Assembly: GCA_010909165.1 (NCBI GenBank)
Contig: MU008174.1
Span: 1,161,972 to 1,225,971, forward strand
Length of the DNA: 64,000 nucleotides
Reading direction: 5' to 3'
Origin: Anthoceros angustus
Taxonomy: Eukaryota; Plantae; Anthocerotophyta
The position numbers were made by a program, and so were the translations under genes. Within the stretch, counting starts at the first letter, position 1, and each line of letters starts with the position of its first letter. Positions 4,306 to 61,397 of this stretch are shown here, in pieces. Under the pieces are notes generated by a model. The model was not told where the DNA came from and made no database searches. It worked only from the letters and a program-made list of their open reading frames with translations.

Positions 4306-4509
4306 TGTTGAGCGAGTGGCACGGGCGCCACGGATCTTAGGCACGGTTCGTAGTTTGATTAGATCGGGCTCATACCATTAGTTGATGGTAGCGCATGTAA
4401 CCGTAGCAAAGCAGTTGCATAGCTGCAACTACACGCACTTGATTGTGTACTTAAGCTCATCTTGTTCACTAATAAAATACTCTCTTTTTCTGCATCGCGC
4501 TCCGCTTTA
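4306..4509 (+). repeat. Copia 5' LTR
   Basis: TGTTGAGC...CGCTCCGCTTTA, matches 10624-10833, followed directly by the PBS. Confidence 0.9.
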
Positions 4510-10833: not shown

Positions 10834-11120
10834 TCCGCTGGTAACCACTGCTCCAAGAGATTGCTTGCTTGTGTCGCCGGGTGTAACCAGGCCGGAGAAC
10901 TTGAAGTCCTCGGCAATCGTGTCAGCCACGGACTTGCACGGGAATTCGTTGACGTGGGGGTTGGGGTTGCTAGTGTCCTGGGCGACGCAGAAATCCTGCA
11001 ACGGGTCGGCGTCGTTCACCAGGATGAAGCCCGGCGCAGAAGCAAGGAAGAAGAACACAGCAGCTGCCGCCTAAGCTGCACCCCTAGGCCTGCTGTTGAT
11101 TGCCTCGTGTGCGCCGCCGT
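10834..11120 (-). pseudogene. GLP: Germin-like gene G1 (type A), 5' half
   Basis: ORF 10831-11058 reads DADPLQDFCVAQDTSNPNPHVNEFPCKSVADTIAEDFKFSG. The position of the paralogues' ATG reads ACG (11118-11120). Confidence 0.9.
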
Positions 11121-12884: not shown

Positions 12885-13329
12885 CTCCAAGTCTTCTTGT
12901 AGAGAAATCTCAAATTCCAAGTCTGAACTTGGCCACTTGCCCTGGAAAGTTCACCGTCTGAAATTTGAGCTGGTGCTAGCGATACATATATGTATGCAAT
13001 CAGACAACTCACACCCGCCAATTCCTCGAAGAAAATGGCTGCCGATCGGCGCTAGTACTGACTCAGGCCTACACCAGAGGCAGTTGGCTGCAAGTGCTGT
13101 AGAAAATAGGCGGATGCTGCTCAGCAGGATTGAAAGACAATGTACGCTTTCTTAGAACAGGACTGGTGAGGTACGGAGATGAGAAGGATGCCTCCAGCTT
13201 CCAATGAGAAGGAGGCAGGTCACATGACAGGACATCTATTCCTATGACCTATCAATGTGGGTAGAGGATATCTATGAGCATGACTTATCATCGCGGGTAG
13301 AGATATCATCTACATATTCCAAAGACTTA

Positions 13330-14036
13330 TCAATGTGGGTAGAAGGCCTCCTGCTTCTTCTCGAGGGCCTTTACATGCTTGGCATTGATGCCAAACGTTT
13401 GTGACAAAACATCCACAGGAATGCCTGAGGTGAAGAGGGCAGGGCGAAGTTGGAAGCCGGAGAGTACTGCGTGTTGAGAGCTGAGATGACCCAGGATGCA
13501 CCATCTGCTAAATTCTTCATGAAGATCAAGGATCCCTCGGGAACACGAACACTTCACCCTGCTTCAGAACAGTGCTGTAGAGCTTGTTGGCTTGGGACGG
13601 CACGAATCCCACCTCCAGCTCGCCTTCCACCAGGTAGATGATCTCGGTGGCCCTGGCGTGGTGGTGCGGCGGGTTGAGCCCACCCTTAGCGAAGTCGATC
13701 CTCTGCAAAGCGATGCCGAGGGTGTTCAGCCCAGGGAACACGTTCACGAATCCGCTGGTGACCACTGCTCCAAGAGGGTGCTTGCTGGTGTCGCCGGTGT
13801 AACCAGGCCGGAGAACTTGAAGTCCTCGGCAGTCGTGTCGGCCACGGACTTGCAAGGAATCCATTGATGTGGGGGTTTGGATTGCTAGTGTCCTTGGCGA
13901 CGCAGAAATCCTGCAACGGGTCGGCGTCGTTCGCCAAGATGAAGCCCGGCGCAGACGCAAGGAACAAGAGCACAGCGGCTGCCACCATCACCGTGACCTG
14001 CACCCCTGTTCCTGATTGCTTCGTGTGTGCCGCCAT
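13330..14036 (-). CDS. GLP: Germin-like protein G2 (type A); 1 bp indels break the frame
   Basis: Signal peptide MAAHTKQ...AVLLFLA, DADPLQDFCVA, GLNTLGIALQRIDFAKGGLNPPHHHARATE, GEVFVFPRG, C-terminus KKQEAFYPH*. No intron in the CDS. Confidence 0.92.
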
Positions 14037-14281
14037 CTCCAAAGGCCTTAGAACCTTCCACAGCTGCCTTGCAAAACGGGTATACGCAATAGGCTGACGA
14101 AGAGCCCAACAAATGAGCTGTGGAGAGGTCTGACAGGCCTTCAACGTGATTGAGCACTACTCCACTTCGATTGAAAGTGCGATTGCTGTTGCTGATGAGA
14201 CCGCAAAGACAGAAGTTGTGAGCAAGCCTGAATGTGTGAAGCAGCTAAAGCTTGTTGACATGCTCGGCTCTGGCTACCTGC

Positions 14282-14287
14282 TTTATA
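14282..14287 (-). promoter_or_regulatory. Candidate TATA box of G2
   Basis: TATAAA ~245 bp upstream of the ATG, conserved in all three type-A promoters. Confidence 0.45.
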
Positions 14288-15745
14288 GTGGCCCCATTTG
14301 CTCAAAGACGCGTCTGCAGTTGCCGTCAACGTCCCAGCCTCCAGGTGCTTCACTAAAGAACTCATATCTTCAACGACTTGCGCCAGTTGCGATCAAGTCA
14401 AGCTGGACACGCCATCTTTCCGACATTTGACTCCTCCAGGATGCATGCTACTCCCAGGCCCAACGGGCCCACAGTCCCCACCTGGGGCCTACTATGCAAG
14501 CAACGAAGGACTGGTGTCAGCATCCCACGGAGAGCCTGACAGGACATACAGCACACGAATCCGGTAACTGCAATTGTTTAGTAGAGACTAGAGTCGTAAT
14601 CATGTTGGCAACATCATATCCACATAGCTACAGGCTACAACCCGTCGTTGAGAATAGAGACTTTATTATGAAAAACAGATTGGAAAAACCCATCCACATG
14701 TGACAAAGGAAACAACCCCCAGGAGAGTACAAGACCATAGCACTAACCCCCGTTGTGGCCGATCTTGTAGCTACCGACCGCGCCAAGAATATCAAAATCG
14801 GGGATAGGAATCTTCAAGATGTACATGTTTCAGCTTCATTGTGCAAGCTTGCCTCTCATTGGCAACGATATCGCATGCATTCAGCTATTGGAAGCAGCCA
14901 ATTGAAGACCCTTGTTACATGTGTGAAGTTGACCCATTTCATACGATATCTGCATCCGGTGCTGAAATTCCGACCAGATGCGGTATCCTCGTCGAATGCC
15001 CCAGATTCTACTAATATGATGACTTTTGCATTGAAGGTGGATTGGCTCCATCCCGCATCCACTCGACCCAGAGAAGGTTTGTGGCTACAGCTGCCCGCAG
15101 GAAGCATCCTTGGTGTTACAACGCGAAGGTGTGCAGGAAGCTGCCTGAGGTCACGAATGTCGTGTATTTGACTCCTTGCATTACTTTGCATGATTTTGAA
15201 AGTCTGCTGCCAATGCGTACCCGACCATAACCGACAACAAACAAGGTGGCCTCTGCTAACGTGTGTGGAGAGTGTCTTTCCTTTCTTAAGAATCGGCTGT
15301 GCTTGCACCTCTTGGTCATGTGATCACATGTGAACCATTCCTAGATTGTTTGGCTACTATGCCTAGTTTTGTTTGTAGTGGAACTTTACGGAAGGATCTG
15401 AGTACGGTTGTGATGAGAAGCCGTTCCAGAATACCAAATCATGAGATGCTTGGTGTATACTGCTTGCTTCCAGGAGGCCATGTGCAAGGTAGTTATAGTA
15501 CATGGAAAGAACATGATGTGCAAAAAGCGCTGGAATTGCAGTACTGCACGGGTAGGTTGACAACTGGTACATTTGCGCTGAGAGAGTCCTGTACCGGTGG
15601 AGACCGAACGAGGCTTTAGATGCGTGTGCCATCGACGCAACTTGATACACCAAATTGAAGAATTGGAAATCATATTTGTATTGGAACGATGAGCCACAAC
15701 GACATCCATACAGAGTATCGAAAAAACATGTTACAGATAGCTATA

Positions 15746-16433
15746 TCAATGTGGGTAGAAGGCCTCCTGTGTCTTCTCGAGGGACTTCACGTACTTGGCA
15801 CCCACGCCAAACGTTTGTGACAGAACATCCACAGGGATGCCTGAGGTGAAGAGGGCCGGGGCGAAGTTGGAAGCCGGAGAGTACTGCGTGTTGAGAGCTG
15901 AGATGACCCAGGACGCACCATCTGCCACATTCTTCATGAAGATCAAGGAACCCCTTGGGAACACAAACACCTCACCCTTCTTCAGCACGGTGGTGTAGAG
16001 CTTGTAGGCTTGGGACGGCACGAACCCCACCTCCAGCTCGCCTTCCACCAGGTAGATGATCTCCGTGGCCCTGGCGTGGTGGTGCGGTGGGTTGAGCCCA
16101 CCCTTAGCGAAGTCGATCCGCTGTAAAGCGATGCCGAGCGTGTTGAGCCCCGGAATACGTTCACGAATCCGCTGGTGACAACTGCTCCAAGAGGGTGCTT
16201 GCTGGTGTCGCCGGGTGTAACCAGGCCGGAGAACTTGAAGTCCTCGGCAGTCGTGTCGGCCACGGACTTGCACGGGAATCCATTGATGTGGGGTTGGGGT
16301 TGCTGGTGTCCTTGGCGACGCAGAAATCCTGCAACGGGTCGGCGTCGTTCGCCAGGATGAAACCCGGCGTAGAAGCAAGGAAGCAGAGCACAGCAGCTGC
16401 CGCCACCACCGTGATCTGGACCCTCGTTGCCAT
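15746..16433 (-). CDS. GLP: Germin-like protein G3 (type B); indel-broken
   Basis: MATRVQITVVAAAAVLCFLA signal peptide, QDFCVA, NPPHHHARATE, KKGEVFVFPRGSLIFMKN, ending TQEAFYPH*. Confidence 0.93.
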
Positions 16434-16746
16434 CTCCAACCTTGCTGGTGGAGAAACAAGTTCCAACTCTGCAAGTTCACGTCCGAATTCTAAGCTGGTG
16501 CTAGCGATGTGTGCAATCCACACCACTCACACCCACCAATTCCTCCGACTAAATGAAAGCCGATGGGCACTTCTACTGATGCAGGCCGTCAGCCTTGGCA
16601 GTGAAGATGTGAACTGCAACCTTCTGGTGTCGATCAAAGGCAGATGTTGCCCAGCTCGATTGAAAGAAAGAAGAATATTTGCTGAGAACTGCTGAGAACT
16701 CCTGATGAGATAGATGAGATATGGAGATCAGGAGGCAGCCTGCAGC

Positions 16747-16752
16747 TATATA
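16747..16752 (-). promoter_or_regulatory. Candidate TATA box of G3
   Basis: TATATA ~315 bp upstream of the ATG; same motif upstream of G6. Position alone is weak evidence. Confidence 0.3.
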
Positions 16753-18303
16753 TGTGATCATGGCCCTCAGGAGCGTTTGGGGCGTTTGAACTTTGCAGAC
16801 TCTGCACATCAGGTCAACTGAGTGCGGAAGGCACTCACTGCATCGTCATCGTTGCGCCGGCCTCTGTCAACGACTGGAGTCAAGCCTGACATGTCTTCAA
16901 GACTGACTAGTTTAATAAAACCACAGGCGGCGCAAGGCAGAGCCCACCTCCACCATGACCGACAAGAAGAGCCATAAAAATTCATCAGAGGAGTATGAAC
17001 AGTACTGTACACTGCGTATACGTCAGCATCCTACTGATCTGACATAGATCTGCATTCCATTACCGTAACGAATTCATAACCAAGTGATCAGATCCGCTTT
17101 GAGGCATTAGAAGATCCATCCATGAATCTACTTGAAAGCACGCAATCACCGACTGCAAGTGGCTGCATTTGTCTACTTATAGCCCGAATCATACGACATC
17201 AAGAGGCTAGAGCCTGCCTGTAGTAAATTATGATTTCTGGTCTCATGAGATTTCAGGCAGCTCGGGATCGATCATGATTCTCCTGACCAGATCTACTGGG
17301 TATACCCATGATGCATACAATGTAATGTATGTAAGCTTTCAAATGTAATACATGAAGCTGTGGAGGAAGCAGCGCCGTTGAATTGACGCTATTGGGGGTC
17401 ATTCCTGGTCGCGCACATCACCTGCTCATGCATTAGAATACGATGAAGAGCTACGTGGCTGCCGTGGCAGGTTCCACAAAGAGCAAGCAATTTGCAAAGG
17501 TGCCGGCTGTGCCGTCCATCGGTCCTGAGCTCGTCCCATAGATCTTTCCATGGGCTTTGTGTACATTTGCTCCAATTATGATTTTTCTCTGAAAAGGCCA
17601 TCTTCAAAACCAGTTTAAAAATTCATGGTAGTGGATACATCACAACGACATGAGATTCGAATACATGAATATTAGGAGGTACTTGTCATGGATATCCTCC
17701 AGTGGGTGCTTAGTCATATTGATGGTCCTCTTCAAGTACTTCCGGATCTTGGTGGTGGATGGTAACCAAGGTTTGTAATCACCACACCAGCACCTAATCG
17801 TATGCTCTCCAATCCCTCCTTTTATCCAATGCTTGAGATGCCTTCCACAAACCTTTTCAGGTTTGCTATTCCACTATAGCTGCAAATCTCTCTCTTGCCG
17901 ACCACTCTGCCTGTGAAGTTGGACTTCGAGATCAAGTTAACGCTACCCATAATTCACTCTCATCAGCCTAAGGACTCATCGCATGTTGTTCATAGGTATC
18001 ATGAAGAGAACGAGATTGTTAGCGACACGAGATAGGAAGGAGGAGAATTTGAAGGGCATAACCTTCGGGCTACGTAAGCTTATTTTCAGAGTAAACAAAC
18101 ACTAGTACACACAATAGGACAGCTTCTGTTTTCTATTTATGTATAATGTGCTTTGTCGGAGTGGAGTTCATGTACTAGCAATGTTCAGAGGCTATGGGGT
18201 GGAGGTGATCTCTTTAAGGGACCCTCCAGCATATGTGACAAAACAGAGTACATTTGTAGTAAACAAAACTGGGCATTATAGGTAGGAGGAGGAATTCCAA
18301 ATT

Positions 18304-19024
18304 CTACAGATGAAACAAGCGTTTCTGCGATTTGACGATGTGCTTGGCCTGCTTGTTGCTGATGCCGAAAGCCTGTGCCAGGACATCCAAAGGGATGTTA
18401 GAGCTCAGGAGCGCACTCGCAAAGCTCTGAGGCGGGGAGTACTGGGTGTTGAGCGCAGAGATGACCCAGGACGGGCCTGCTGCCACATTTTTCATGAAGA
18501 TCAAGGATCCCCGAGGAAACACATACACCTCGCCCTTGAGGAGCGTGGTCTTGTACAGCTTGTGGCTTTGAGATGGCATGAATCCTACCTCCAGCTCTCC
18601 TTCCACCAGGTAGATGATCTCTGTAGCCCGCGCGTGATGATGCGGGGTTGAGCCCTCCTCGGCTAAGTCGATTCTGTGCAATGCGATTCCCAGGGTGTTG
18701 AGCCCCGGGAACACGTTCACGAATCCGCTGGTGACCACGGCTCCCAGAGGATGCTTGCTGGTGTCGCCCGGCGTCTTGAGACCCAGGAATTTGAAGTCCT
18801 CGGCTGTGGTGTCGGACTCCGGCTTGCACGCGTAGCCGTTCACATTGGGCTGGGGTCGGTGGTGTCCAGAGCCACGCACAAGTCCTGTAGTGGGTCGGAA
18901 TCGGCAGCGAAAGTGACGCCCGGGCGCCCGATATGAAAAGCAGAGCGTGCGCTGTCATGATCATGACGAGCAGCTGGAGCTTCGTGCTTGCTGATCCGGA
19001 TCGGGATCGCCTCATGTAAGCCAT
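18304..19024 (-). CDS. GLP: Germin-like protein G4 (type C); indel-broken
   Basis: DSDPLQDLCVA, NGYACK, GLNTLGIALHRID, PHHHARATE, LKGEVYVFPRGSLIFMKN, ending SQKRLFHL*. Confidence 0.92.
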
Positions 19025-19204
19025 GATTTCAGCCTTCAGGACGTGCCCTGCTCAGATCAGGTCAGCTTGTGACAAGGCCAGCTCGGTGCAGTCTCGATCT
19101 GGGATGGGTGATGCTGCAGCAGTCTAGGCAGTGCTCAATGACAACAGCCTTGAGAAGCAGGATTGTCAGAAGTAGATGGAACACATCGCAGGCATGTATG
19201 GAAA

Positions 19205-19210
19205 TTTATA
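19205..19210 (-). promoter_or_regulatory. Candidate TATA box of G4
   Basis: TATAAA ~185 bp upstream of the first ATG; also present upstream of G7. Confidence 0.3.
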
Positions 19211-21785
19211 CCACCCCACAGTCCACACGGCTTACACCTTTTCACGACTGGTCGTGTTTGTGCACAGCTTTCGAGCCCAAGATCCTCAGCAAATCCACAA
19301 GATTTGAGGAACCAATCGACTGGCTGATACTAAAAAGTCTGCTCTCCGATAGTCGAGCATTTCGGTGCATACGTTGTGCATATGAGCCGCTGCCTGATAT
19401 CTCTCTATCGGCAGATAATGGTACAGGTAGCTGAGATTGGTGATGGCAATTGTCTTGAATGCACCGCCAGGATGGGCCGGCCGACTATTGCTGAAAGCCT
19501 TGGGCGAAGAGCGATTGGTACTTTGGTTGATGCTAGCACTTTCTTCTTCGCAGTGTTTTTTTGGGGCCAAGGTAACCGGTTGCATCAACAAGGAAATCAC
19601 AGCCAGAAACCCGGGCTTTGGGGCTGTGGCTGCTACAATTTTGCACAGTGACTGGTCCTGGTGGCTGCTGGCTGGTGCCACTCACTGTCTAATTCCTACT
19701 TTGCATTCTTGTATTGGCGAGTGGTTACAGCCGAAAGATTTCCCGAGCGGAACTACATGCGCGTCTTCCCCAAATTCTGCAGGCACATTTTCACCTAGCT
19801 CTCACAGGTTTATGGGCCCGGAACCCTAGATCCTTGACTCGAGGTCCGCACGCTTGTGGAGACGACTGCTGTTCAGGACTCAAGTCAAAGTTGATGAGCA
19901 TGCTCATCAACAGATCCTGCAAGGAAACAACCAGCGAAGCTCGCCCAAGGCCAATGGAAAGTGGGAGCGGGAACCGGGCCCATCTGGGCCCAGGAGTGGG
20001 CTGCTCTCGATTGTCGTGACCTTTCATCAGGTACATTAATCTTGTCAACTCCACAACCATAATTCAGCCTGTCTCTGACAGACAACGAGCCAAGCCACAA
20101 CAGAGCTCATTGGCGGGCAAAGATTGTCCCACAACAACGTTGTGTCAGGCTTGACCCGTTTAAAACACTCGGACAACCGGAAACCGGCATATTGTATGTT
20201 CAAATCCATCTGCCCAGCCGCACCGTATGTATGTACGCCGTGTGGCCGACGACTACAGCACAAGTCAATCTCACAGACGCGTACTCATACGATGGGGGAA
20301 GGGTATACATGCTGGGTTTCCTTCTACGTTTCAAATCATCCTATCTTCCACCACTCCAACAGAATTTCAGGATCAGAACCAGTACTCATTACTCACTAGC
20401 ACTCGGAGCAACTGCTACAAGGGAGCTTCGAATCCCGAGTCATCAAAACAGCTTGGTCGAGATCTCTTGTGAGGGACTTCACAAGTTCACACCACGACGT
20501 GATCACCCACAAGTCGGCTGCCAACCGAGCTCTGGGCTCTCCAAGTTATAAGAAAAATCACCAACTGTTATAAGAAAAATTAGACGACATTCATCGGAGA
20601 TGACAAAATTCAAACCGTTGTAAACCTTTTCCTACCAAAAAGTTCAAACCCGTATAAAAGCTATCGTTATAAAATAATAATATAAGTTATTCAAATACTA
20701 CCTACAGGACTAAACAAGGGTAGGGATAATGCGGAGTCATATCGTGAATATTTTCAATGATGGATACATTTGCCTAGTCTTGCAACAACACGGCCAAAAC
20801 ATCGAAAGGCTCTTCTAAGAATTTGTAAGACATCCACATCATAGTGAATGCAAGGGATAAATAAGCCTAGTGATGCTATGCGAGAAGCTGAGGTGTTAGC
20901 AGAAGTAGCTTGGGAAAGCAGCAAGCTGCAACTACCAACAAGCCCCAATTAGCACATGCAATTTATGTGCTACCTTCAAATGCAAAGCGTTGAGTCCACA
21001 GTCTCCTATAATTGATGATGTCTAAGCAAGATTTCATTTCTCATAGCAAGACCTAGAGTTCCCACAGCACTTCAGTAGCCCATCAGCACCCTCGAGTCCA
21101 AGCACACATCAGCAGCCCATCAGCCCCACATCACCCTACGGCTTCATCCTTGCACCCGGTTGCAATTGCCTAGTTCGGAAAAAGAAATCAGCAGAGGTGT
21201 ACCGTAGCCCATACCCGTGCCCAGCATCCGTCCTGCAATCTGGCTAGCTGATATAGTAGAGCTCGCCTCAAATCGGCTACGTCCTCGCACGGGGCTGCAG
21301 ACATTGCAACGTCCTGCACATCCTGCCTCATGTAGACAGGTCCTTCCCTCCCAGCTCAAGCTGAGCCTACAGAATAGCCATGGAAAATCAGCAAGATACC
21401 TTCACCACCATCTCAAAATGCTAGACAATGCAGAGCTCCTTGTAGCTCTTCCAGGCCACACCATGAGAGGGAGTCCAACAAAGTACCGCCCTTGCCCAGC
21501 CGTGCAAGAGCTGCTGCTGAGGCATTGCCGTGCGGCGATGCATCATCCGCCATCTCCCTAAGCCGCCAAACCCTACCGTGCGGATCTTTGCTCCACACCC
21601 CTCCTCCAGCTCCCCGGCCGCCTCCACCGCCGATGCGCCCGCCCGGCAGCACGCACTTCGATCCCGGGCCTCGCAAACAAGTCCAACGTCTAGACAGATG
21701 AAAAAGGAGAGCGTTTCGCAGTTTCAAACTTTAATAAAAACAATGAAAATTATCATGTCTTACGCAAATGAGTAAGTGGAGTGGT

Positions 21786-22931
21786 AGAGCTTCTGCTTCC
21801 TCTCGTGCTACTCACGGTATTGCCTCGGCGTGCGCTCTCAGACGCTCCTTATACAGGATGCATATTCAAGATATCAACCTCAGGAAGCGCCTATTCAACT
21901 CTCTGGTCATCCCATCTACTATGTATGGCGCGAACTCGGGGCCTTGATCTCCTGCCTTCTTCTTGGCCTAAGGTGGAAAAAGAACAGCTTCTTTTCTTCG
22001 TGCTCACATACTGTAATCGCTCTACCTCTTCATGTCCTTCGCTCGAGTTTGCCGCCTTTCCTTAGAACTTGATGATCTCTTCCGTCTTCCTCTTTCTTTT
22101 ACCGCCCACCTTCTTGACCAACAAAACCCTCACCTCCTCCTTACCTTCTCCTTGCTTTTCGGTCGTCTAGACCTCCGTGGAGATGGCTCTATTTTTGTTG
22201 GTATGCCAAAGCCTCCATGTGGCGGAAGCGATACCACTTTAGTCCTTCAAGCTACTCTCCTGCTTGGCCACCCTTCAATTAGCCGATCCCCTCCACACCC
22301 TCCCTCTAACCACCTTATCCATAAGGCAATCAAATTTCGATACCTCCGCCTTACTTGGTACCCTATTCCCTCTCAGCCTCTTTCTACCAAGCTTCTTTAC
22401 TATAAGGAGCACTTTCGTGATCTCTCTCTAGCTTCAAACCGCCACGCTACCTTAATTCCCCATGTCTTTCAAGCTTTGCTCTTTAACGGTCAATTTCGTG
22501 TCACCCCCATCGCCCGTTGAGATCGATCACTAGAGCCGCCTCCTGAAGATCGCATTTGTAGGCTCTGTTCTTCTAATACGGAATGCGGAATGCACTTTCT
22601 CTTTTACTGCCGTGCTGTTAACGACATCCGGGCCAAATACTCTCCTTTTTGAGTGTGCATGTTTTTCCCTGCGGCGCTTTTTTTCCTTTCATATTCCCAA
22701 GCTTTCTGCTCTATGTCTTTCTGAGATGCTTGATCACAGGCTATCCTTGCTTGGCCCCCTGTAACTTTCTTGTCAATCCTCCGCCTTTTATTTTCCCTAT
22801 TTTTATTTCTCTAGTTCAGACGTACGTATGCGTACACCCTCCTTCATCCAAGTTATGGCTATACGTTTCTATGCCATGGTGGTTTTCCACCCCATTGGAC
22901 ATAAATAAAAGTTGTTGTTGTTGTTGTTGTT
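21786..22931 (+). mobile_element. 5'-truncated non-LTR retrotransposon (LINE) with (GTT)7 tail
   Basis: Post-RT motif RKRLFNSLVIPSTMYGAELWG...RSTPLHVLRSEF. C-terminal CX2CX8HX4C knuckle CRLCSSNTECGMHFLFYC from 22557. AATAAA at 22904 followed by (GTT)7 at 22911-22931. Confidence 0.8.
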
Positions 22932-23000
22932 GTGCTCGCGCACACGAGGATGGGTGGTCGAATCCGCCTCCTCCGCGGGATTTTACGATTTTGGAAGCCT

Positions 23001-23520
23001 TTGTCCAAGCTAGCATTTGTGCACGATGTCATTTACTTAAGTATCATTTACTACTTGTTTTACCTTGTAGAACAACCACGGCACCACCTCTATGTCTTTA
23101 TTTTTCATTGCCTTTGTCCAAGCTAGCATTTATGCACCGATGTCATTTACTTTAAGTGTCATTTACTACTTATTTTACCTTGTAGAACAACCACACCACC
23201 TCTATGTCTTTATTTTTCATTACTATTACCTCTCTGTCCTTACTTTTTAACTATGGTGAATAAGCCCGATACCACTTCACGCCCGCAAGTGCGGCCTATC
23301 ATACATGACACTTTTCAATTATAAAATAAGTACCACCTTTATGTCCTTGTTTTTTCGCCCATCATACATGTCACTTTTCAATTATAAAATAAGCACCACC
23401 TCTATGTCCTTGTTTTTCACTATGGTGAATAAGCACGCACCACCTTCACGCCTACAAGTGCGGCCCATCATACATGATACTTTTCAGTTGTAGATAAGTA
23501 CCACTCCGGTTTTTTCTATT
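23001..23520. repeat. Nested ~110 bp and ~140 bp imperfect tandem repeats
   Basis: TTGTCCAAGCTAGCATTT...CTCTATGTCTTTATTTTTCATT occurs twice (23001, ~23114). CTATGGTGAATAAGC...GTGCGGCC.ATCATACATG occurs twice. Confidence 0.8.
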
Positions 23521-23589
23521 GTAGAACAAGCACGACACCACCGCGACCTCCATTCTGCATATAAAATATCACAATGCAATTGTCCGTGG

Positions 23590-23915
23590 ATGGATCCTAT
23601 GCACACTTGGTGATGGAAATGTCATTGATATGCCATATGTTGGCATAATGCCAAAAATTTTAAAGGTTGACTCTGGGTATCAACACCTGGAATGTTTTGA
23701 AGGTCAAGTGGTTCAAACCAGTTTATAATGAAGATGCAAAGGATCGTCGCAAGGGCTTGAAGATAGACACATCCGGAATGCATATAGTGAACCCCAAATC
23801 TTTGTATCCTCTACAAGAGTCCAAGATGAACCCTTTACCCTTGTGTCAGCCAAACTAGATCAGACTTTTCTCTATGACAATCAGATGGTTGTCGAGACTG
23901 GTGCATGAGGAAAAT
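23590..23915 (+). pseudogene. CACTA TnpD C-terminal fragment, DUF4216-like
   Basis: Across frameshifts: YVGI...ILKVD...WNVLKVKWFKPVY...GLKIDTSGMHIVN...DEPFTLVSQ...QTFLYD, matching the YYG-I / KWF / D-G / EPF-LASQ-QVF pattern. Confidence 0.7.
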
Positions 23916-23999
23916 GACTTGTTTTAGAAGGAATAAGTACATTTTGTTAGTGGTTCCAGCTTTAATAGCTTGTCCATGTAACCCATAAACTCTCTTTCA

Positions 24000-24790
24000 C
24001 TTTGATCTCTTGTAAAACGGTTTGTTTAAAACCTTAAAGTTCCTTAGTTAAGAAAAAGAAAGTGTTGTAAAAGGACGCAACATTGCACTAGAAAACTATG
24101 TCCCACGATTTACAACGTGGTTTACAATTGAAACTTTTTTACTGATACTTGTTATAAAAAAGATGAATAATTTTACAACATCTACATTTTACAATGCAAG
24201 TTATAAGGAGAAATCTAAAATATTTAAAATTATAATGACCCTAGTTGTAAAATGGACGTGGCCCTGTACAACATAAACTCTTAACTATGCAAATTACAAC
24301 GCTAAATTAGAGATATTTTAAAAAAATAAAATATTTTGTTGTAAATATACATTCATGTGTTGTAAAAGCAGTGTTGTAAAATCCAAGTTATTGATGTAAA
24401 AAAAGCCCCGTTGTAAAAAGCATATTCTGTGTTGTAAAAGCCATTTTGTTAAACATAGGCCAACGTTGTAAAAGACATCGTGTTATAATTAGAGTAGACA
24501 ACGTTATAAACCTTGAGTTGTAAAACAACCGCTAATATTGCAAATAGATATTGTATTGTAATTATGGCAGCCCGCGTTGTATAAACGCCATGTTGAAAAC
24601 TATAGTATGTTGTAATCTTGCAAACCCTCATTGTAAAAGCTCCTAAAGAGTGTCACGTTGTCAAAATACCCCACATTGTAAAACATCAAACCCATGTTGT
24701 AAAGTGTTAAAATCTGTACAAAAATAATACATGAGCTGAAAACCCACGTTGTAAAATGAACACACGTCTAAAAACCCTCGTCTCTAGTTT
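24000..24790. mobile_element. CACTA-type subterminal repeat array (GTTGTAAAA / TTTACAAC)
   Basis: Dozens of TTGTAAAA motifs in both orientations. CACTAGAAAA at 24086 resembles a CACTA terminus. Lies next to the DUF4216 fragment. Confidence 0.6.
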
Positions 24791-27373: not shown

Positions 27374-28290
27374 GCGAACATCTCGTGTGTTTGCTGCAGC
27401 GCAGCATTTATGGCCTCAAGCAATCAGCTCATAATAGGAATGTCTACGTGGACGACTTCCTCTTGCAATTGGCATGTGGATTCTCCAAGTGCCCATTCGA
27501 TGGTAATTTGTACGTTCTCTGGTCGGGGGATGCTCTTGTTATCCTCACCTTATATATGGATGACTGAATCCTTGCGAGCAATGCTGAGCAAGGGTTGCTC
27601 GCTAAGACCATCATCATGCTCAAGTCTAAATTCAGCATGGTTGACTTGGATAATATTCATTATTGCATTGGGATGAAGGTCACTCGTGACCACGCACTTA
27701 GAACCTTGCATCTCACTCAAATGCAGTATATTAAGGACACACTAACTGCTAGAATGCAAACCAGCACCTACCCCGCTCGCCGTCGGGGCACCCTTGTCCT
27801 CTGACCAGGCTCCCAAGACCGATACGGAGTGCAAGTACATGGAGGCCATCCCCATCAAGAAGCAGTTGGGCGCATTAATTAGATTTGCACCATTATGCGT
27901 CCTGATATCGGGCATGCAGTTCGTGTACTTGCTCAACAGCTGGCAAACCTAGGACCCGCACATTGGTCCCTTAAGCAAACTTTGCGCTACCTTAAGAGGA
28001 CTATGGCCTATGGACTCAAATACCATGGACCTCACGCCGGAAATGCAACTCCAGCCTCCTTCCCTCAACTTTCAGCTTATATCGACGTGGATTAGGGGAG
28101 AGACGTGGACTCCAAGAAATCCACATCAAGATATGTTGGCCATGCGCATGAGGATGTTGAAGATAGCCCTCCACTAATCGACAAGGTTCATAACCTCTGG
28201 ACGACATTCCCAAAGAAGATTGGTTTTGTGCACAATGCGCTACATGAGGTGCGTACGTGTATAGTCCTACTAATGATAATGTTTTGACTA
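26700..28290 (+). pseudogene. Second Copia family: RT and truncated RNase H
   Basis: KARLVPQGYTQ, DVKTAFLYG...EEIYMRQPEGY, IYGLKQS, LTLYMDD, RPDIGHAV, AYIDVD, then AGGGGGGGA (PPT-like) at 28307-28315. Confidence 0.9.
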
Positions 28291-28314
28291 AGAGTCTCAC
28301 ATTATCAGGGGGGG

Positions 28315-30672
28315 ATTGGTTTGCACCTATATTTGCATATTAGATTTGTTTTGCTTGGTCGTCTGTTGAGGAAGTGCTCATATGAATGCAAGTGCTTACT
28401 TCGTGCGACATTACTTTCATAGTGTAAATGATAATGCTAAATGTTTATAGGATGATCTTTATAGTCATTTTCTTGTTTGGGGTATATTTATTGGGATTCC
28501 GAGTTAGTCTTGATCAAGAAGCTAATACAAGCCATGAAGGGCGTCTATTACCCATGGCCATCTCGCGCTCTCCAGTATTACTGAGCGTTTCTTAGCAGAT
28601 CAAAGTGAATTAGAAACCAAGTAGCAGGTACCTCTTTCGTGAATAGGAAAATTAAATAGTTATAGCTATATTCTTAGAAAAATAGACTATATGCTCGATA
28701 AATAGATTATTTATAGATAAATTAAATAGTATTCTTAATAAATAGGACAAATAAAGTAAAATAAGATAAGTCTGAAATGAGCTAACACCCAACCAACCTA
28801 CCCACTAAAATTGAATGGCCAAACGCCTAACCAACCCAAATACCTAACCAACCCAAACACGATAAGAAACAAACATCTGACCTTCTTGGCTTGGACCAAG
28901 AGACATCGTGATAGAGAAGTAAACGAGGTCCAATTCCTCTGCTACGAAATCGTGAAACGCACCGTAGCAAAGACAATTTCAAATTTTTCCTAGTTCAAAA
29001 ATCAGAAGCTCAGTTCATAACTTGTCTTCTAGATATGGAGTACAAGAGTGTTGTGAGGAGGCCAAAGCTATGACTCCGAGAGGGATGTGTGAGGAATTTG
29101 CATGTTGTTCTCGTGCGGAGAGTGTGTTTGTGCCATGACGTGCAAGGTACTCCCTTCTATTGTTATTGGTTTGCACCTATATTTGCATATTAAATTTGTT
29201 TTGCTTGGTTGTCTGTTGAGGAAGTGCTCATATGAAAGCAAGTGCTTACTTCGTGTGATATTACTTTCATAGTGTAAATGATAATGCTAAATGTTTATAG
29301 GATGATCTTTATGGTCATTTTCTTGTTTGGGGTATATTTATTGGGATTCCGAGTTAGTCTTGATCAAGAAGCTAATACAAGCCATGAAGGTCGACACAGA
29401 GCGCATGGCCATCTCGCTTTGTGTTACAAACGTCGTTTCTTAGCCGATCCAAACCGATTTATAAGTAGCATTCTTTCGTGAATAGGAAAATTAAATAGTT
29501 ATAGCTATATTCTTAGAAAATAGACTATATGCTCAAGAATAGATTATTTATAGATAAATTAAATAGTATTCTTAATAAATAGGACAAATAAAGTAAAATA
29601 AGATAAGTCAGAGAAATGCATATCTTAAACCAACCTACCCACTAAAATTGAATGGCCAAATAACCAACCCAAATAACCAACCCAAACACCGACAAGAACA
29701 AACATCAGACGCATTCTTGGCTTGGACCAAGAGAATCGTGATAGAGAAGTAAACGAGGTCCAATTCCTGCTGTGAAACGCCGTAGCAAGACAATTTCATA
29801 GTTCAAAAATCAAGCTTTCATAACTTGTCTTCTAGATATGGAGTACAAGAGTGTTGTGAGGAGGCCAAAGCTATGACTCCGAGAGGGATGTGTGAGGAAT
29901 TTGCATGTTGTTCTCGTGCGGAGAGTGTGTTTGTGCCATGACGTGCAAGGTACTCCCTTCTATTGTTATTGGTTTGCACCTATATTTGCATATTAAATTT
30001 GTTTTGCTTGGTTGTCTGTTGAGGAAGTGCTCATATGAAAGCAAGTGCTTACTTCGTGCGATATTACTTTCATAGTGTAAATGATAATGCTAAATGTTTA
30101 TAGGATGATCTTTATGGTCATTTTCTTGTTTGGGGTATATTTATTGGGATTCCGAGCTAGTCTTGATCAAGAAGCTAATACAAGCCATGAAGGCGTCTGA
30201 GCAGACCCATGGCCATCTCGCGCTCTCGGTGTTAAACGGCAGGCTTAGCCGATCCAAACCGAACGGGGAACCAAGTAGCGGTACCTCTTCCGTGAATAAG
30301 AAAATTAAATAGTTATAGCTATATTCTTAGAAAATAGACTATATGCTAAATAGATTATTTATAGATAAATTAAATAGTATTCTTAATAAATAGGACAAAT
30401 AAAGTAAAATAAGATAAGTCTCAGAGAAATGAGCGGGTAACATCCAACCAACCTACCCACCAAAATTGAATGGTCAAACGCCTAACCAACGAAATACCTA
30501 ACCAACCCAAACACCGATAAGAAACAAACACCAGACGCCTTCTTGGCTTGGACCAAGAGATCGCATGTACCAAGGATAGAGAAGTAAACGAGGTCCAATT
30601 CCTATGCTACAAAATTAAACGCGCCGTAGAAAGCAAAGACAATTTCAAATTTTTCCTGGTTCAAAAATCAGC
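28315..30672. repeat. ~800-850 bp unit in three tandem copies, possibly LTR-derived
   Basis: ATTGGTTTGCACCTATATTTGC at 28315, 29165 and 29968. The first copy begins right after a Copia PPT. Confidence 0.85.
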
Positions 30673-32276
30673 AGTTACTCAGCGAACATTTTTCGATGAT
30701 GATAACTTTTCTTTGTTCATACATATTGCAATATTTTGATCAATAGGTCCTGATCCACATCGAGTTTGATGCAAGACATATGAATGTGCTTTCCATAGTT
30801 CAATTCCTTCCATACAATCTCATCTTCGTGAATCTTAATAGTAACCCATCTAGCTTTTGTCAAGTAGTACAATACTTTCTACAAGAGAGGAAAAATACCA
30901 ATCTAGTATCATACCAGGATGGTTCAACAGATATCGCCAAATATTTAATTTTTGAAAAATAAGATTAAACATAAATATTCATATTTTGAAAATTTTAATA
31001 TTTGTGAAAAATAATTTTAATCAAATTTCAAAATTTATTAAAATACATAGGTATCTACATATATAGAACTAATGGATATGTATAGACCTCCCTAAACAAA
31101 GCTAATTTTTCACAAAACCCTAGTTTCCTTGTTTTCAGATCTTAAACTCATAAATTTTTACATATTCAGCATTTTACATATTCAGCATTTTAAGTATAAT
31201 AATTTCTGGATTTTTAATTTCTACTAATTTTAATTAATTAATGCCCAATCACTGCTCGGGGTCCGGTAGTCTACAAGTACGTTAGGTTTTAAAAGAATAG
31301 TTCATGTATCTTTGCAGATAAGGACGAAAGTACCGGAGCTAAGACAATGTACATTTATGATCCACCCAAAGTTTAGGTGGATTCTTTTCTTTTTAAGTTA
31401 ACTCTAGAATGACGAGGGGCTTTCCTGCCATGTTTTTGCTCAAATATTAATTGTATTTTTGGAGGGCATGTTAATTTTTAATTTTTCTACTAATATTATA
31501 ATTACGAGCGATGTCATTGGCTTCAAAATGTACGCTCACAAATATGAGGCAGATAAGTGCCCGGTTCTAAGTAACCCTACATGAACTCATCTATCGGAAT
31601 CTCGAGGCATAGGTTGGATTTTGAGGTATTTATTTTAAAATTGTTTTTTAAAACATGATATCGAAGGACCATGTGATCGGAATATATGCTCAAGGTCTGT
31701 AAGTTCAAAATATAAGTGAACATAAATGTATGGAGTGATATGTATCAAAGGCTCGTTTTGAGTAGATTAATATTCTGGATTAAAATGAAATATATTAACA
31801 TATTTAATAAAATTATTATTTCGTGGATCTCGTCTTCTTGAGCCTTAATTGAGACGTTGTAGTTTCCTTTGTGGAGTCGTCAGGTCAATCAACTCTAACA
31901 GCTGTCATTGTTAGAGTCGATCGAGTAAGAAAGCTACCAGGTTCCGAAGAGAGCGCGATAGGGATCTTTTGTAGAAGATCCTCAAACGACGTACCCAATC
32001 CAAGAGGTGTGAACGGACACCACGAATCGTGAGGGAGAGAATGAAAGAAAGAAATTAGAATTACAGGAGCAGAAAGATGCTAACAAAACGGCCTGATGCT
32101 ACTTATCAGCAGCTGCCCAGAGTGTGTGCGCAAGACATGACGGCAGCCAGCTGAAGCCTGCACTGTAGAGTGTAGAGGACATCTATTCCTATGACCTATC
32201 AATGTGGGTAGAGGATATCTATGAGCATGACTTATCATCGTGGGTAGAGATATCATCTACATATTCCAAAGACTTA

Positions 32277-32985
32277 TCAATGTGGGTAGAAGGCCTCCTG
32301 CTTCTTCTCGAGGGCCTTTACATGCTTGGCATTGATGCCAAACGTTTGTGACAAAACATCCACAGGAATGCCGAGGTGAAGAGGGCAGGGGCGAAGTTGG
32401 AAGCCGGAGAGTACTGCGTGTTGAGAGCTGAGATGACCCAGGACGCACCATCTGCTAAATTCTTCATGAAGATCAAGGATCCCCTCAGGAACACGAACAC
32501 TTCACCCTGCTTCAGAACAGTGCTGTAGAGCTTGTTGGCTTGGGACGGCACGAATCCCACCTCCAGCTCGCCTTCCACCAGGTAGATGATCTCGGTGGCC
32601 CTGGCGTGGTGGTGCGGCGGGTTGAGCCCACCCTTAGCGAAGTCGATCCTCTGCAAAGCGATGCCGAGGGTGTTCAGCCCAGGGAACACGTTCACGAATC
32701 CGCTGGTGACCACTGCTCCAAGAGGGTGCTTGCTGGTGTCGCCGGTGTAACCAGGCCGGAGAACTTGAAGTCCTCGGCAGTCGTGTCGGCCACGGACTTG
32801 CAAGGGAATCCATTGATGTGGGGGTTTGGATTGCTAGTGTCCTTGGCGACGCAGAAATCCTGCAACGGGTCGGCGTCGTTCGCCAGGATGAAGCCCGGCG
32901 CAGACGCAAGGAACAAGAGCACAGCAGCTGCCACCATCACCGTGACCTGCACCCCTGTTCCTGATTGCTTCGTGTGTGCCGCCAT
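32277..32985 (-). CDS. GLP: Germin-like protein G5 (type A); indel-broken
   Basis: ORFs 32692-32991 and 32318-32803 give MAAHTKQ...QDFCVA...NGFPCK...NPPHHHARATE...RGSLIFMKN. Confidence 0.93.
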
Positions 32986-34785
32986 CTCCAAAGGCCTTAG
33001 AACCTTCCACAGCTGCCTTGCAAAACGGGTATACGCAATAGGCTGACGAAGAGCCCAACAAATGAACTGTGGAGAGCGTCTGACAGGCCTTCAACGTGAT
33101 TGAGCACTACTCCACTTCGATTGAAAGTGCGATTGCTGTTGCTGATGAGACCGGAAAGACAGAAGTTGTGAGCAAGCCTGAATGTGTGAAGCAGCTAAAG
33201 CTTGTTGACATGCTCGGCTCTGGCTACCTGCTTTATAGTGGCCCCATTTGCTCAAAGACGCGTCTGCAGTTGCCGTCAACGTCCCAGCCTCCAGGTGCTT
33301 CACTAAAGAACTCATATCTTCAACGACTTGCGCCAGCTGCAGTCAAGTCAAGCTGGACACGCCATCTTTCCGACATTTGACTCCTCCAGGATGCATGCTA
33401 CTCCCAGGCCCAACGGGCCCACAGTCCCCACCTGGGGCCTACTATGCACGCAACGAAGGACTGGTGTCAGCATCCCACGGAGAGCCTGACAGGACATACA
33501 GCACACGAATCCGGTAACTGCAATTGTTTAGTAGAGACTAGAGTCCGTAATCATGTTGGCAACATCATATCCACATAGCTACAGGCTACAACCCGTCGTT
33601 GAGAATAGAGACTTTATTATGAAAAAAGATTGGAAAAACCCATCCACCGAGACAAAGGAAACAACCCTTAGGAGAGTACAAGACCATAGCACTAACCCCG
33701 TTGTGGCCGATCTTGTAGCTACCGACCGCGCCAAGAATATCAAAATCGGGGATAGGAATCTTCAAGATGTACATGTTTCAGCTTCATTGTGCAAGCTTGC
33801 CTCCCATTGGCAACGATATCGCATGCATTCAGCTATTGGAAGCAGCCAATTGAAGACCCTTGTTACATGTGTGAAGTTGACCCATTTCATACGATATCTG
33901 CATCCGGTGCTGAAATTCCGACCAGATGCGGTATCCTCGTCGAATGCCCCAGATTCTACTAATCTGATGACTTTTGCATCGAAGGTGGATTGGCTCCATC
34001 CCGCATCCACTCTACCCATAGAAGGTTTGTGGCTACAGGCTACAGCTGCCCGCAGGAAGCATCCTTGGTGTTACAACGCGAAGGTGTGCAGGAAGCTGCC
34101 TGAGGTCACGAATGTCGTGTATTTGACTCCTTGCATTATTTTGCATAATTTTGAAAGTCTGCTGCCAATGCGTACCCGATCATAAACGACAACAAACAAG
34201 GTGGCCTCCGCTAACGTGTGTGGAGAGTGTCTTTCCTTTCTTAAGAATCGGCTGTTCTTGCACATCTCTTGGTCATGTGATCACATGTGAACCATTCCTA
34301 GATTGTTTGGCTACTATGCCTAGTTTTGTTTGTAGTGGAACTTTACGGAAGGATCTGAGTACGGTTGTGATGAGAAGCCGTTCCAGAATACCAAATCATG
34401 AGATGCTTGGTGTATACTGCTTGCTTCCAGGAGGCCATGTGCAAGGTAGTTATAGTACATGGAAAGAACATGATGTGCAAAAAGCGCTGGAATTGCAGTA
34501 CTGCACGGGTAGGTTGACAACTGGTACATTTGCGCTGAGAGAGTCCTGTACCGGTGGAGACCGAACGAGGCTTTGGATGCGTGTGCCATCGACGCAACTT
34601 GATACACCAAATTGAAGAATTGGAAATCATATTTGTATTGGAACGATGAGCCACAACGACATCCATTGCTCTCACGAGGAGCTCGGTAGAATTCACTAGA
34701 GAACGACATCCACACATTTGCCGCAGCTTCCTACAAGCCTCAGGACGTGCACAGAGTATCGAAAAACATGTTACAGATAGCTATA

Positions 34786-35472
34786 TCAATGTGGGTAGAA
34801 GGCCTCCTGTGTCTTCTCGAGGGACTTCACGTACTTGGCACCCACGCCAAACGTTTGTGACAGAACATCCACAGGGATGCCCGGTGAAGAGGGCCGGGGC
34901 GAAGTTGGAAGCCGGAGAGTACTGCGTGTTGAGAGCTGAGATGACCCAGGACGCACCATCTGCCAAATTCTTCATGAAGATCAAGGAACCCCTTGGGAAC
35001 ACAAACACCTCACCCTTCTTCAGCACGGTGGTGTAGAGCTTGTAGGCTTGGGACGGCACGAACCCCACCTCCAGCTCGCCTTCCACCAGGTAGATGATCT
35101 CCGTGGCCCTGGCGTGGTGGTGCGGTGGGTTGAGCCCACCCTTAGCGAAGTCGATCCGCTGTAAAGCGATGCCGAGCGTGTTGAGCCCCAGGAATACGTT
35201 CACGAATCCGCTGGTGACAACTGCTCCAAGAGGGTGCTTGCTGGTGTCGCCGGGTGTAACCAGGCCGGAGAACTTGAAGTCCTCGGCAGTCGTGTCGGCC
35301 ACGGACTTGCACGGGAATCCATTGATGTGGGGTTGGGGTTGCTGGTGTCCTTGGCGACGCAGAAATCCTGCAACGGGTCGGCGTCGTTCGCCAGGATGAA
35401 ACCCGGCGTAGAAGCAAGGAAGCAGAGCACAGCAGCTGCCGCCACCACCGTGATCTGGACCCTCGTTGCCAT
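34786..35472 (-). CDS. GLP: Germin-like protein G6 (type B); indel-broken
   Basis: ORF 34781-35302 carries the cupin core. Signal peptide lies in ORF 35200-35565. Confidence 0.93.
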
Positions 35473-37343
35473 CTCCAACCTTGCTGGTGGAGAAACAAGT
35501 TCCAACTCTGCAAGTTCACGTCCGAATTCTAAGCTGGTGCTAGCGATGTGTGCAATCCACACCACTCACACCACCAATTCCTCCGACTAAATGAAAGCCG
35601 ATGGGCACTTCTACTGATGCAGGCCGTCAGCCTTGGCAGTGAAGATGTGAACTGCAACCTTCTGGTGTCGATCAAAGGCAGATGTTGCCCAGCTCGATTG
35701 AAAGAAAGAAGAATATTTGCTGAGAACTGCTGAGAACTCCTGATGAGATAGATGAGATATGGAGATCAGGAGGCAGCCTGCAGCTATATATGTGATCATG
35801 GCCCTCAGGAGCGTTTGGAGCGTTTGAACTTTGCAGACTCTGCACATGAGGTCAACTGAGTGCGGAAGGCACTCACTGCATCGTCATCGTTGCGCCGGCC
35901 TCTGTCAACGACTGGAGTCAAGCCTGACATGTCTTCAAGACTGACTAGTTTAATAAAACCACAGGCGGCGCAAGGCAGAGCCCACCCCTGCACCATGACC
36001 GACAAGAAGAGCCATAAAAAAATTCATCAGAGGAGTATGAACAGTACTGTACACTGCGTATACGTCAGCATCCTACTGATCTGACATAGATCTGCATTCC
36101 CATTACCCTAACGAATTCATAACCAAGTGATCAGATCCGCTTTGAGGCATTAGAAGATCCATCCATGAATCTACTTGAAGCACGCAATCACCGACTGCAA
36201 GTGGCTGCATTTGTCTACTTATAGCCCGAATCATACGACATCAAGAGGCTAGAGCCTGCCTGTAGTAAATTATGATTTCTGGTCTCATGAGATTTCAGGC
36301 AGCTCGGGATCGATCATGATTCTCCTGATCAGATCTACTGGGTATACCCATGATGCATACAATGTAATGTATGTAAGCTTTCAAATGTAATACATGAAGC
36401 TGTGGAGGAAGCAGCGCCGTTGAATTGACGCTATTGGGGGTCATTCCTGGTCGCGCACATCACCTGCTCATGCATTAGAATACGATGAAGAGCTACGTGG
36501 CTGCCGTGGCAGGTTCCACAAAGAGCAAGCAATTTGCAAAGGTGCCGGCTGTGCCGTCCATCGGTCCCGAGCTCGTCCCATAGATCTTTCCATGGGCTTT
36601 GTGTACATTTGCTCCAATTATGATTTTTCTCTGAAAAGGCCATCTTCAAAACCAGTTTAAAAATTCATGGTAGTGGATACATCACAACGACATGAGATTC
36701 GAATACATGAATATTAGGAGGTACTTGTCATGGATATCCTCCAGTGGGTGCTTAGTCATATTGATGGTCCTCTTCAAGTACTTCGGATCTTGGTGGTGGA
36801 TGGTAACCAAGGTTTGTAATCACCACACCAGCACCTAATCGTATGCTCTCCAATCCCTCCTTTTTATCCAATGCTTGAGATGCCTTCCACAAACCTTTTC
36901 AGGTTTGCTATTCCACTATAGCTGCAAATCTCTCTCTTGCCGACCACTCTGCCTGTGAAGTTGGACTTCGAGATCAAGTTAACGCTACCCATAATTCACT
37001 CTCATCAGCCTAAGGACTCATCGCATGCTGTTCATAGGTATCATGAAGAGAACGAGATTGTTAACGACACGAGATAGGAAGGAGGAGAATTTGAAGGGCA
37101 TAACCTTCGGGCTACGTAAGCTTATTTTCAGAGTAAACAAACACTAGTACACACAATAGGACAGCTTCTGTTTTCTATTTATGTATAATGTGCTTTGTCG
37201 GAGTGGAGTTCATGTACTAGCAATGTTCAGAGGCTATGGGGGTGGAGGTGATCTCTTTAAGGGACCCTCCAGCATATGTGACAAAACAGAGTACATTTGT
37301 AGTAAACAAAACTGGGCATGATAGGTAGGAGGAATTCCAAATT

Positions 37344-38044
37344 CTACAGATGAAACAAGCGTTTCTGCGATTTGACGATGTGCTTGGCCTGCTTGTTGCT
37401 GATGCCGAAAGCTGTGCCAGGACATCCAAAGGGATGTTAGAGCTCAGGCGCACTCGCAAAGCTCTGAGGCGAGTACTGGGTGTTGAGCAGAGATGACCCA
37501 GGACGGGCCTGCTGCCACATTTTCATGAAGATCAAGGATCCCGAGGAAACACGTACACCTCGCCCTTGAGGAGCGTGGTCTTGCAGCTTGTGGCTTTGAG
37601 ATGGCATGAATCCTACCTCCAGCTCTCCTTCCACCAGGTAGATGATCTCTGTAGCCCGCGCGTGATGATGCGGGGGTTGAGCCCTCCTCGGCGAAGTCGA
37701 TTCTGTGCAATGCGATTCCCAGGGTGTTGAGCCCAGGAACACGTTCACGAATCCGCTGGTGACCACGGCTCCCAGAGGATGCTTGCTGGTGTCGCCCGGC
37801 GTCTTGAGACCCAGGAATTTGAAGTCCTCGGCTGTGGTGTCGGCCTCCGGCTTGCAGCGCCGTTCACATTGAGGCTGGGGTCGGTGGTGTCCAGAGCCAC
37901 GCACAAGTCCTGTAGTGGGTCGGAATCGGCGAAAGTGACGCCGGGCGCCCGACATGAAAAGCAGGCGTGCGCTGTCATGATCATGACGAGCAGCTGGAGC
38001 TTCGTGCTTGCTGATCCGGATCGGGATCGCCTCATGTAAGCCAT
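37344..38044 (-). CDS. GLP: Germin-like protein G7 (type C); heavily indel-broken
   Basis: Near-copy of G4: MAYMRRSRSGSAST..., DSDPLQDLCVA, PPHHHARATE, GSLIFMK. Confidence 0.88.
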
Positions 38045-40730: not shown

Positions 40731-41017
40731 AGAGCTTCTGCTTCCTCTCGTGCTACTCACGGTATCGCCTCGGCGTGCGCTCTCAGACGCTCCTTATACA
40801 GGATGCATATTCAAGATATCAACCTCAGGAAGCGCCTATTCAACTCTCTGGTCATCCCATCTACTATGTATGGCGCTGAACTCTGGGGCCTTGATCTCCT
40901 GCCTTCTTCTTGGCCTAAGGTGGAAAAAGAACAGGCTTCTTTCCTTCGTGCTCACATCGCCTGTAATCGCTCTACCCCTCTTCATGTCCTTCGCTCTGAG
41001 TTTGCCGCCTTTCCCTT
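40731..41017 (+). mobile_element. LINE fragment, copy 2, interrupted by the Gypsy
   Basis: ORF 40803-41123 begins MHIQDINLRKRLFNSLVIPSTMYGAELWG. Only 14 bp (61384-61397) continue beyond the Gypsy. Confidence 0.8.
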
Positions 41018-46622: not shown

Positions 46623-46640
46623 TTTTGGCGCCTGCCGGGA
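46623..46640 (+). promoter_or_regulatory. Primer binding site (tRNA-Asp type)
   Basis: TTTTGGCGCCTGCCGGGA, equal to the plant tRNA-Asp complement TGGCGCCGTTGCCGGG with 2 nt missing. Confidence 0.8.
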
Positions 46641-46759
46641 GTGTCATTGTTGTCAAGACCTTAGAGTAGACTAACCTTGTCTAGTAGTGTATTGGGAGTC
46701 TTGAGTGTGATACATGGATGCTACCCATTGAGTCCGAAAGTTCCGACCGTGAAGAGAAG

Positions 46760-49700: not shown

Positions 49701-49840
49701 CAACAAGACAGGCCAATGGTGACTACGAACGGCTGTGCCAAGACTGCAAACAACAGGGTCATGTAGCGGGGAGTGTCACCTGCCCAAATCCGAGGAAGAC
49801 TGTTCGAATTGCTCAACCACCTGTGACAGGGGTTCAGCAA
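46760..49840 (+). repeat. ~1.54 kb tandem duplication in Gypsy gag
   Basis: AAGAAGACAACGCTGCCGTGGAGCGAGGCG at ~46769 and ~48312. Confidence 0.85.
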
Positions 49841-61383: not shown

Positions 61384-61397
61384 CCCTTAGAACTTGA

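Follow-up and report, generated by a model that had tools for sequence, protein, structure and literature searches.

What can a germin-like protein do once one of its four metal ligands is gone? Few protein families of the land-plant apoplast are as strongly amplified or as abundant as the germin-like proteins (GLPs), and homology is the routine basis for annotating their members as manganese-dependent superoxide dismutases (Mn-SODs) or oxalate oxidases. The question is raised by an array of germin-like genes in the hornwort Anthoceros angustus, between positions 13330 and 38044 of a 64,000-nucleotide stretch of contig MU008174.1 (this whole stretch is called the window below, and all positions are counted from its first letter). 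All six genes of the array encode isoleucine where germins carry the third manganese-binding histidine. As read from the sequence, the canonical 3-His-1-Glu Mn site of germins cannot form in these proteins, since isoleucine cannot coordinate a metal and no other histidine is aligned at that position; we infer that they do not act as Mn oxalate oxidases or superoxide dismutases of the ordinary kind.

A manganese ligand is replaced in all six genes

The six genes, all on the minus strand, were located by tblastn with the longest frames, and their starts and stops by pattern search. By DNA alignment the copies sort into three types: type A comprises G1 (13330-14036) and its near-identical duplicate G4 (32277-32985), type B comprises G2 (15746-16433) and its near-identical duplicate G5 (34786-35472), and type C comprises G3 (18304-19024) and its duplicate G6 (37344-38044). 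The Pfam family Cupin_1 was found on four copies at 94-104 bits (the gathering score, used as cut-off, is 22), with E = 7.6e-30 for G2. The codons ATC TTC ATG AAG/A are found on the minus strand at 13515-13526, 15932-15943, 18490-18501, 32462-32473, 34970-34981 and 37521-37532, i.e. once in each gene, where 0.54 matches would be expected by chance. The isoleucine codon itself lies at 13524-13526 (G1), 15941-15943 (G2), 18499-18501 (G3), 32471-32473 (G4), 34979-34981 (G5) and 37530-37532 (G6); together with two gene remnants upstream of G1 it is seen in eight places.

We compared the type C and type B frames (the latter from G5) with all PDB sequences using phmmer. The top match is barley oxalate oxidase (1FI2, 2ET1; E = 2.6e-25), and for both types the second cupin box, PRGSLIFMKN, is aligned with barley PRGLMHFQFN in a segment free of gaps, so that His137 of barley corresponds to Ile and Gln139 to Met. 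In terms of the germin box patterns, box C (G-x5-P-x-G-x2-H-x3-N) is broken at its histidine, as GEVFVFPRGSLIFMKN carries Ile in that place in all six copies; box B (G-x5-H-x-H-x3,4-E-x6-G) is matched by GGLNPPHHHARATEIIYLVEG, which is invariant apart from assembly insertions and deletions (indels). The first cupin box reads PPHHHARATE and contains the other three ligands (H-x-H-x4-E); a different reading of this box in G3, EEGSTPHHH, results from two compensating assembly indels. Box A and the second disulfide cysteine are present as QDFCVA with NGFPCK in types A and B, and as QDLCVA with NGYACK in type C. At the N-terminus, residues 13-33 form a hydrophobic core (Kyte-Doolittle values up to 3.1) that is followed by NDADPLQDFC, as in mature GLPs, and resembles a signal peptide. 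The NSQNPG motif is replaced by NTQYSP.

The histidine is one of eight conserved positions that have changed. Of 41 positions with at least 80% conservation across the reference GLP domains (see below), the window proteins keep 33 and differ at these eight: S110A, P128A, V136L, L170S, H172I, S190T, P193S and G194P (numbered along the type A precursor). At least three of these (P128A, L170S and H172I) fall inside the two cupin boxes: P128A directly follows H-x-H, and L170S turns PRGL into PRGS. S190T, P193S and G194P belong to the NSQNPG motif. The position of barley Gln139, at which 77% of the references have Gln, is Met in the window proteins. An N-x-S/T sequon is found in none of types A, B and C, a minor difference, as the usual sequon is present in only 54 of 134 references.

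For the unbroken type C frame (18307-18846), AlphaFold2 gave, from an alignment of 93 sequences, a model with a mean pLDDT (predicted local distance difference test score) of 93.7. The best fold match of this model by Foldseek is barley oxalate oxidase 2ET7, with a template-modelling (TM) score of 0.88 and a root-mean-square deviation of 1.9 Å. On these values the predicted fold is that of germin, a jelly-roll barrel with C-terminal helices, and the residue alignment can be trusted. Neither the sequence alignments nor the fold match places another histidine at the third-ligand position.

These results agree with an earlier note, made from the letters of the window, which had read the same box 1, the NTQYSP motif, the cysteine pair (QDFCVA / NGxxCK) and the signal peptide, and which had aligned the third ligand with Ile, citing the codon at 15941-15943 exactly. 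Its observation that the copies share the IFMKN codons holds for every copy, but there are six copies in the range and not the seven that it counted.

The genes are intact and under purifying selection

As assembled, every copy contains one-base frameshifts, including four one-base homopolymer deletions in G1 and two one-base deletions in G2; the longest unbroken frame of the array is found in G3 (191 codons, 18304-18879). The protein searches and the fold prediction were run with frames as they stand in the assembly. We compared the region 13300-19100 with the Logan contigs of two public sequencing runs of one sample (referred to as X1, a DNA run, and X2, called RNA by a tool's guess). The short-read contigs add one base after each of positions 13441, 13533, 13795 and 13855 (G1) and after 16151 (G2). 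Each inserted base is a G or C in a homopolymer where the frame slips, and all of these coding insertions fall on frameshifts. Once the four bases are inserted, G1 can be read from ATG to stop without a break (236 codons), and one of the short-read contigs (run X2, record 9, 13300-13701) agrees with the assembly at the isoleucine codon of G1. The deletion at 13795 is common to G1 and G4 in the window and absent from the read contig, so breaks shared between copies are systematic errors as well.

The same is seen on a larger scale when the two halves of the array, which are near-duplicates of each other, are compared: gap events are 0.4 times as frequent as mismatches (11 versus 27 in the first aligned segment, and 77 versus 184 in the second), an excess of indels far above natural divergence. 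The A. angustus assembly was made from Nanopore reads with wtdbg and polished with Pilon (PMC7027989), which accounts for the many indels in the array, as short-read polishing performs poorly in near-identical tandem copies. The frameshifts are thus homopolymer assembly errors, and the genes are intact in the organism; what the earlier note took for broken halves of G1 is one gene.

Contigs of run X2 cover 13300-14269, which includes the whole G1 transcript with about 180 nt upstream of its ATG, and also parts of G2 and the 5' half of G3; those on G3 are short and contain mismatches. Run X2 has zero depth over the spacers 14270-16015 and 16792-18537, which serve as a silent control, while X1 covers all 30 bins. 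No joints were seen in the contigs over 13300-19100, so the genes have no intron and the transcripts are unspliced.

For estimates of selection (Nei-Gojobori method) all copies were projected onto the corrected G1 frame and gapped codons were skipped. The ratio of nonsynonymous to synonymous divergence (dN/dS) between types is 0.21-0.26 (about 0.22), with dS of 0.25 between types A and B and about 1.0 between either of them and type C. Purifying selection has therefore gone on maintaining the isoleucine-bearing proteins for long since the fixation of isoleucine, which excludes decay. That the change is the same in three diverged types and is not noise, as the earlier note had argued, is borne out by this ratio and by the read contig at G1, and its amplified family of secreted-type germin-like cupins likewise stands, as six germin-like genes of three types maintained by selection.

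Relatives of the array

A word-indexed protein search with the 191-residue G3 frame returned only four matches, all at no more than 45% identity and all with the canonical histidine. With an HMMER profile, 1.84 billion representative proteins were searched exhaustively, which gave 1111 matches; none is close, and none of those aligned (the best 150) has the signature of the window proteins. Single-domain scores reach about 135 bits at best, and the high-scoring top matches are multi-domain or fused predictions with the canonical histidine. This absence of relatives says little about other hornworts, as their proteomes are largely missing from the collections and the array's own genes are not represented there as proteins.

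The reference alignment consists of the best 150 representatives and the four proteins of the word-indexed search, with 156 aligned domains in total. Histidine occupies the third-ligand position in 145 of the 156 (93%). The 11 domains without it are scattered and include three with Tyr, two with Gln and two with Ile; both Ile cases (P0062 and P0118) look like truncated or frame-shifted predictions. The combination of HHH in box 1 with IFMKN in box 2 is found in none of the 156 domains. As for the Tyr cases (P0069, P0077 and P0150), box 1 is intact in two and altered in P0150.

In a maximum-likelihood tree the window types A, B and C form a clade with 100% support in the SH-like approximate likelihood ratio test (SH-aLRT) and a stem of 0.57 substitutions per site, and this clade groups weakly with GLPs of mosses, lycophytes and ferns. 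Its nearest neighbours (weak support) are two sequences, L013 and L014, both from Logan run SRR33208241 (2025) and both with the canonical histidine; one of them adjoins a gene for a leucine-rich repeat (LRR) protein. Metagenome contigs of the Joint Genome Institute (JGI) gave 12 loci, all at no more than 48% identity, and both loci that were translated have the canonical histidine. Our literature searches found no description of a GLP subfamily defined by loss of the third histidine, and no discussion of Gln or Tyr variants at this ligand (those of Selaginella GLP 5-1, P0069, P0077 and P0150).

Layout of the array and its neighbourhood

The three types lie in the order A-B-C in two blocks, 13229-22000 and 32176-40948, which match each other by blastn: 13229-15709 is 98.2% identical to 32176-34666 (2.5 kb), and 15710-22000 is 95.1% identical to 34751-40948 (6.3 kb). 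Within the genes, substitutions between blocks are few (1-4 per pair; for example, four between G4 and the corrected G1, and one between G5 and G2) and indels are many, especially in the second block; the assembled sequence of G6 is much noisier than the other copies, with 28 gapped positions. Either a true but poorly polished duplicate or an assembly duplication may account for the second block, and contig read depth is compatible with both.

About 10 kb of AT-rich sequence parts the blocks. In this region (22000-32000; 34-46% GC) an open reading frame (ORF) is duplicated at 25144-25488 and 26779-27132, with translations that are near-identical over most of their length, and the ORFs tested there have zero Pfam matches. 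When the larger spacer ORFs were scanned against Pfam, the repeat unit yielded no further gene; the only matches were to a Tnp2 (CACTA-type) transposase (1563-2483) and a copia-type integrase (7865-8365), both upstream of the array. These two elements are neighbours of further germin-like fragments: degenerate remnants upstream of G1, within 3264-4423 (at about 3391 and 4094), are heavily frame-shifted and still read TIFMKNVADGAS / IFMKN, the IFMK codon pattern is matched with one mismatch at 9374-9387, and an N-terminal germin fragment at 10834-11034 is 90% identical to residues 30-96 of type A. On the other side of the array, GC and AT skew are both strongly and persistently positive over the region 42000-62000, so that purines are enriched on its plus strand. 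The region contains ORFs rich in Lys, Glu and Arg, one segment of which occurs twice (50552-51235 and 52233-52784), and a retroelement is the probable source of this repeat. The one ORF of this region that we scanned against Pfam had zero matches.

What the altered site may do

The explanation that we favour, with some but by no means full confidence, is that the array represents a lineage-restricted clade of secreted monocupins that has been neofunctionalised, with a three-ligand site and a changed metal preference or chemistry. In such a scenario the A-B-C triplet of paralogues, which lie in tandem, has been duplicated once as a block. The proteins keep the box-1 H-x-H-x4-E and the N-terminal disulfide cysteines, together with the predicted germin fold and a putative signal peptide. 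The inner wall of the metal pocket is remodelled by the replacement of His137 with Ile, of Gln139 with Met, of the Pro after H-x-H with Ala, and of PRGL with PRGS. This would leave a 2-His-1-Glu site with one extra open coordination position next to a more hydrophobic Ile/Met wall, and the open position and the hydrophobic pocket together may alter which metal is bound or what reaction is catalysed. The extra histidine of HHH lies between the two ligand histidines on one β-strand, and would be expected to turn its side chain away from the metal. A bolder form of this proposal, a secreted metalloprotein in which Zn, Cu or Fe occupies an H-x-H-E site next to Met and Ile and the reaction catalysed is new to germins, fixed and amplified in hornworts, is speculative, and we regard it as rather improbable.

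Several points weigh against the favoured explanation. As 33 of the 41 conserved positions are kept, the probability that all three remaining ligands survive by chance is about one half, and their retention is statistically uninformative as to whether the site still holds a metal. A weaker Mn site could be completed by water. Finally, type A is clearly transcribed, but the evidence is partial for type B and doubtful for type C, and the RNA label of the run on which it is based is a tool guess.

The same ligand statistics are compatible with proteins that are metal-free and non-catalytic, in which the pocket would be a hydrophobic ligand-binding or structural site, like that of seed storage globulins. 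The exchange of a polar His and Gln on the pocket wall for Ile and Met fits this idea, and there are precedents for loss of the metal site in cupins of the same fold, such as the 11S globulins, which are among the fold matches of our model; in the GLP peruvianin-I the box-1 ligands have changed. However, the three remaining ligands and the ARATE sequence are invariant across the three types of the window despite a dS of about 1, and this invariance, unlike the situation in peruvianin-I, favours a retained 2-His-1-Glu site; we consider the metal-free alternative possible and, of the competing explanations, the one to be taken most seriously, yet on balance unlikely. That the proteins are ordinary Mn-dependent germin-like SODs, for which three protein ligands and a water suffice and the substitution has no functional effect, seems more doubtful still. 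Box 1 is intact, the proteins are evidently in use, being transcribed and under purifying selection, and the published reading of the hornwort monocupins is that of Mn-SODs like PpGLP6 (PMC7027989). But the histidine is retained in nearly all of the aligned reference domains, isoleucine is unable to coordinate a metal, and the neighbouring Gln139 has changed too. Moreover, Mn(II) binds weakly, and loss of one of its four ligands should cost much affinity. We give hardly any credence to decaying pseudogenes or to isoleucine as a sequencing artefact. The frameshifts in every assembled copy and the very noisy G6 would invite these readings, but independent short-read contigs mend the frameshifts and agree at the Ile codon, and a change from His to Ile needs two base changes, with the same codon found in all eight places; together with the intact G1 frame and the low dN/dS, the read contigs led us to reject both.

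The array thus offers an expressed and selected clade in which a metal ligand present in 93% of the reference domains is missing, and the published interpretation of the hornwort monocupin expansion as SODs for oxidative stress may not apply to it. The clade is also a natural ligand-swap series (Ile/Met versus His/Gln) for asking what role the metal site plays in GLPs. For annotation, apparent pseudogenes in the tandem arrays of this assembly are to be regarded as polishing artefacts.

Comparison with known germins and cupins

Zhang et al. (2020) reported 48 monocupins in A. angustus, in three clades of which the largest (25 members) is lineage-specific, with 27 of the genes in tandem, and interpreted the expanded hornwort monocupins as homologues of the moss Mn-SOD PpGLP6 (PMC7027989). 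The array in the window is probably part of this expansion. The word 'histidine' is absent from the main text and the supplementary notes file of that paper, which do not discuss the loss of a ligand; thus the tandem expansion of monocupins was already known, and the ligand loss appears to be undescribed.

Barley germin/oxalate oxidase (1FI2, 2ET1, 2ET7) shares with the window proteins the Cupin_1 domain, QDFCVA and the second cysteine, H-x-H-x4-E and the C-terminal helices. It differs from them at His137 (Ile), Gln139 (Met) and NSQNPG (NTQYSP), and the identity is only about 34%. Barley Asn75 is replaced by Gln in types A and B and by His in type C, and Asn85 is kept. Compared with the active set of true germins (Asn75, Asn85, Gln139 and 3-His-1-Glu), the window proteins therefore retain Asn85 alone of the three side chains Asn75, Asn85 and Gln139, and have lost His137.

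Two histidines and one glutamate remain in box 1 of the window proteins, which invites comparison, by sequence alone, with cupins that have a 2-His-1-carboxylate facial triad; to our knowledge, the known cupins of this kind keep the motif-2 His and not both motif-1 His. The plasticity of cupin metal motifs is well known (reviewed in PMC4019311). Among GLPs with a replaced box-2 histidine, germin-like protein 5-1 of Selaginella moellendorffii (XP_024536110.1; P0104 in our alignment) resembles the window proteins in that its box 1 is intact, with Gln in place of the histidine. Unlike the window proteins, several of the clearer non-His cases have Gln or Tyr, with which metal binding is still possible, and these are scattered single representatives, none with HHH and IFMKN.

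Peruvianin-I (6ORM), a GLP from latex that was deposited as a cysteine peptidase, ranks fourth by sequence and also by fold among the matches to the window proteins. It is like them in having the germin fold with an incomplete set of metal ligands, and its reported activity, that of a peptidase, is not a germin activity. The two differ in which half of the site was lost: in peruvianin-I the box-1 ligands have changed (there is no H-x-H, and Glu is replaced by Ser) and the box-2 His is kept, whereas the window proteins show the reverse.

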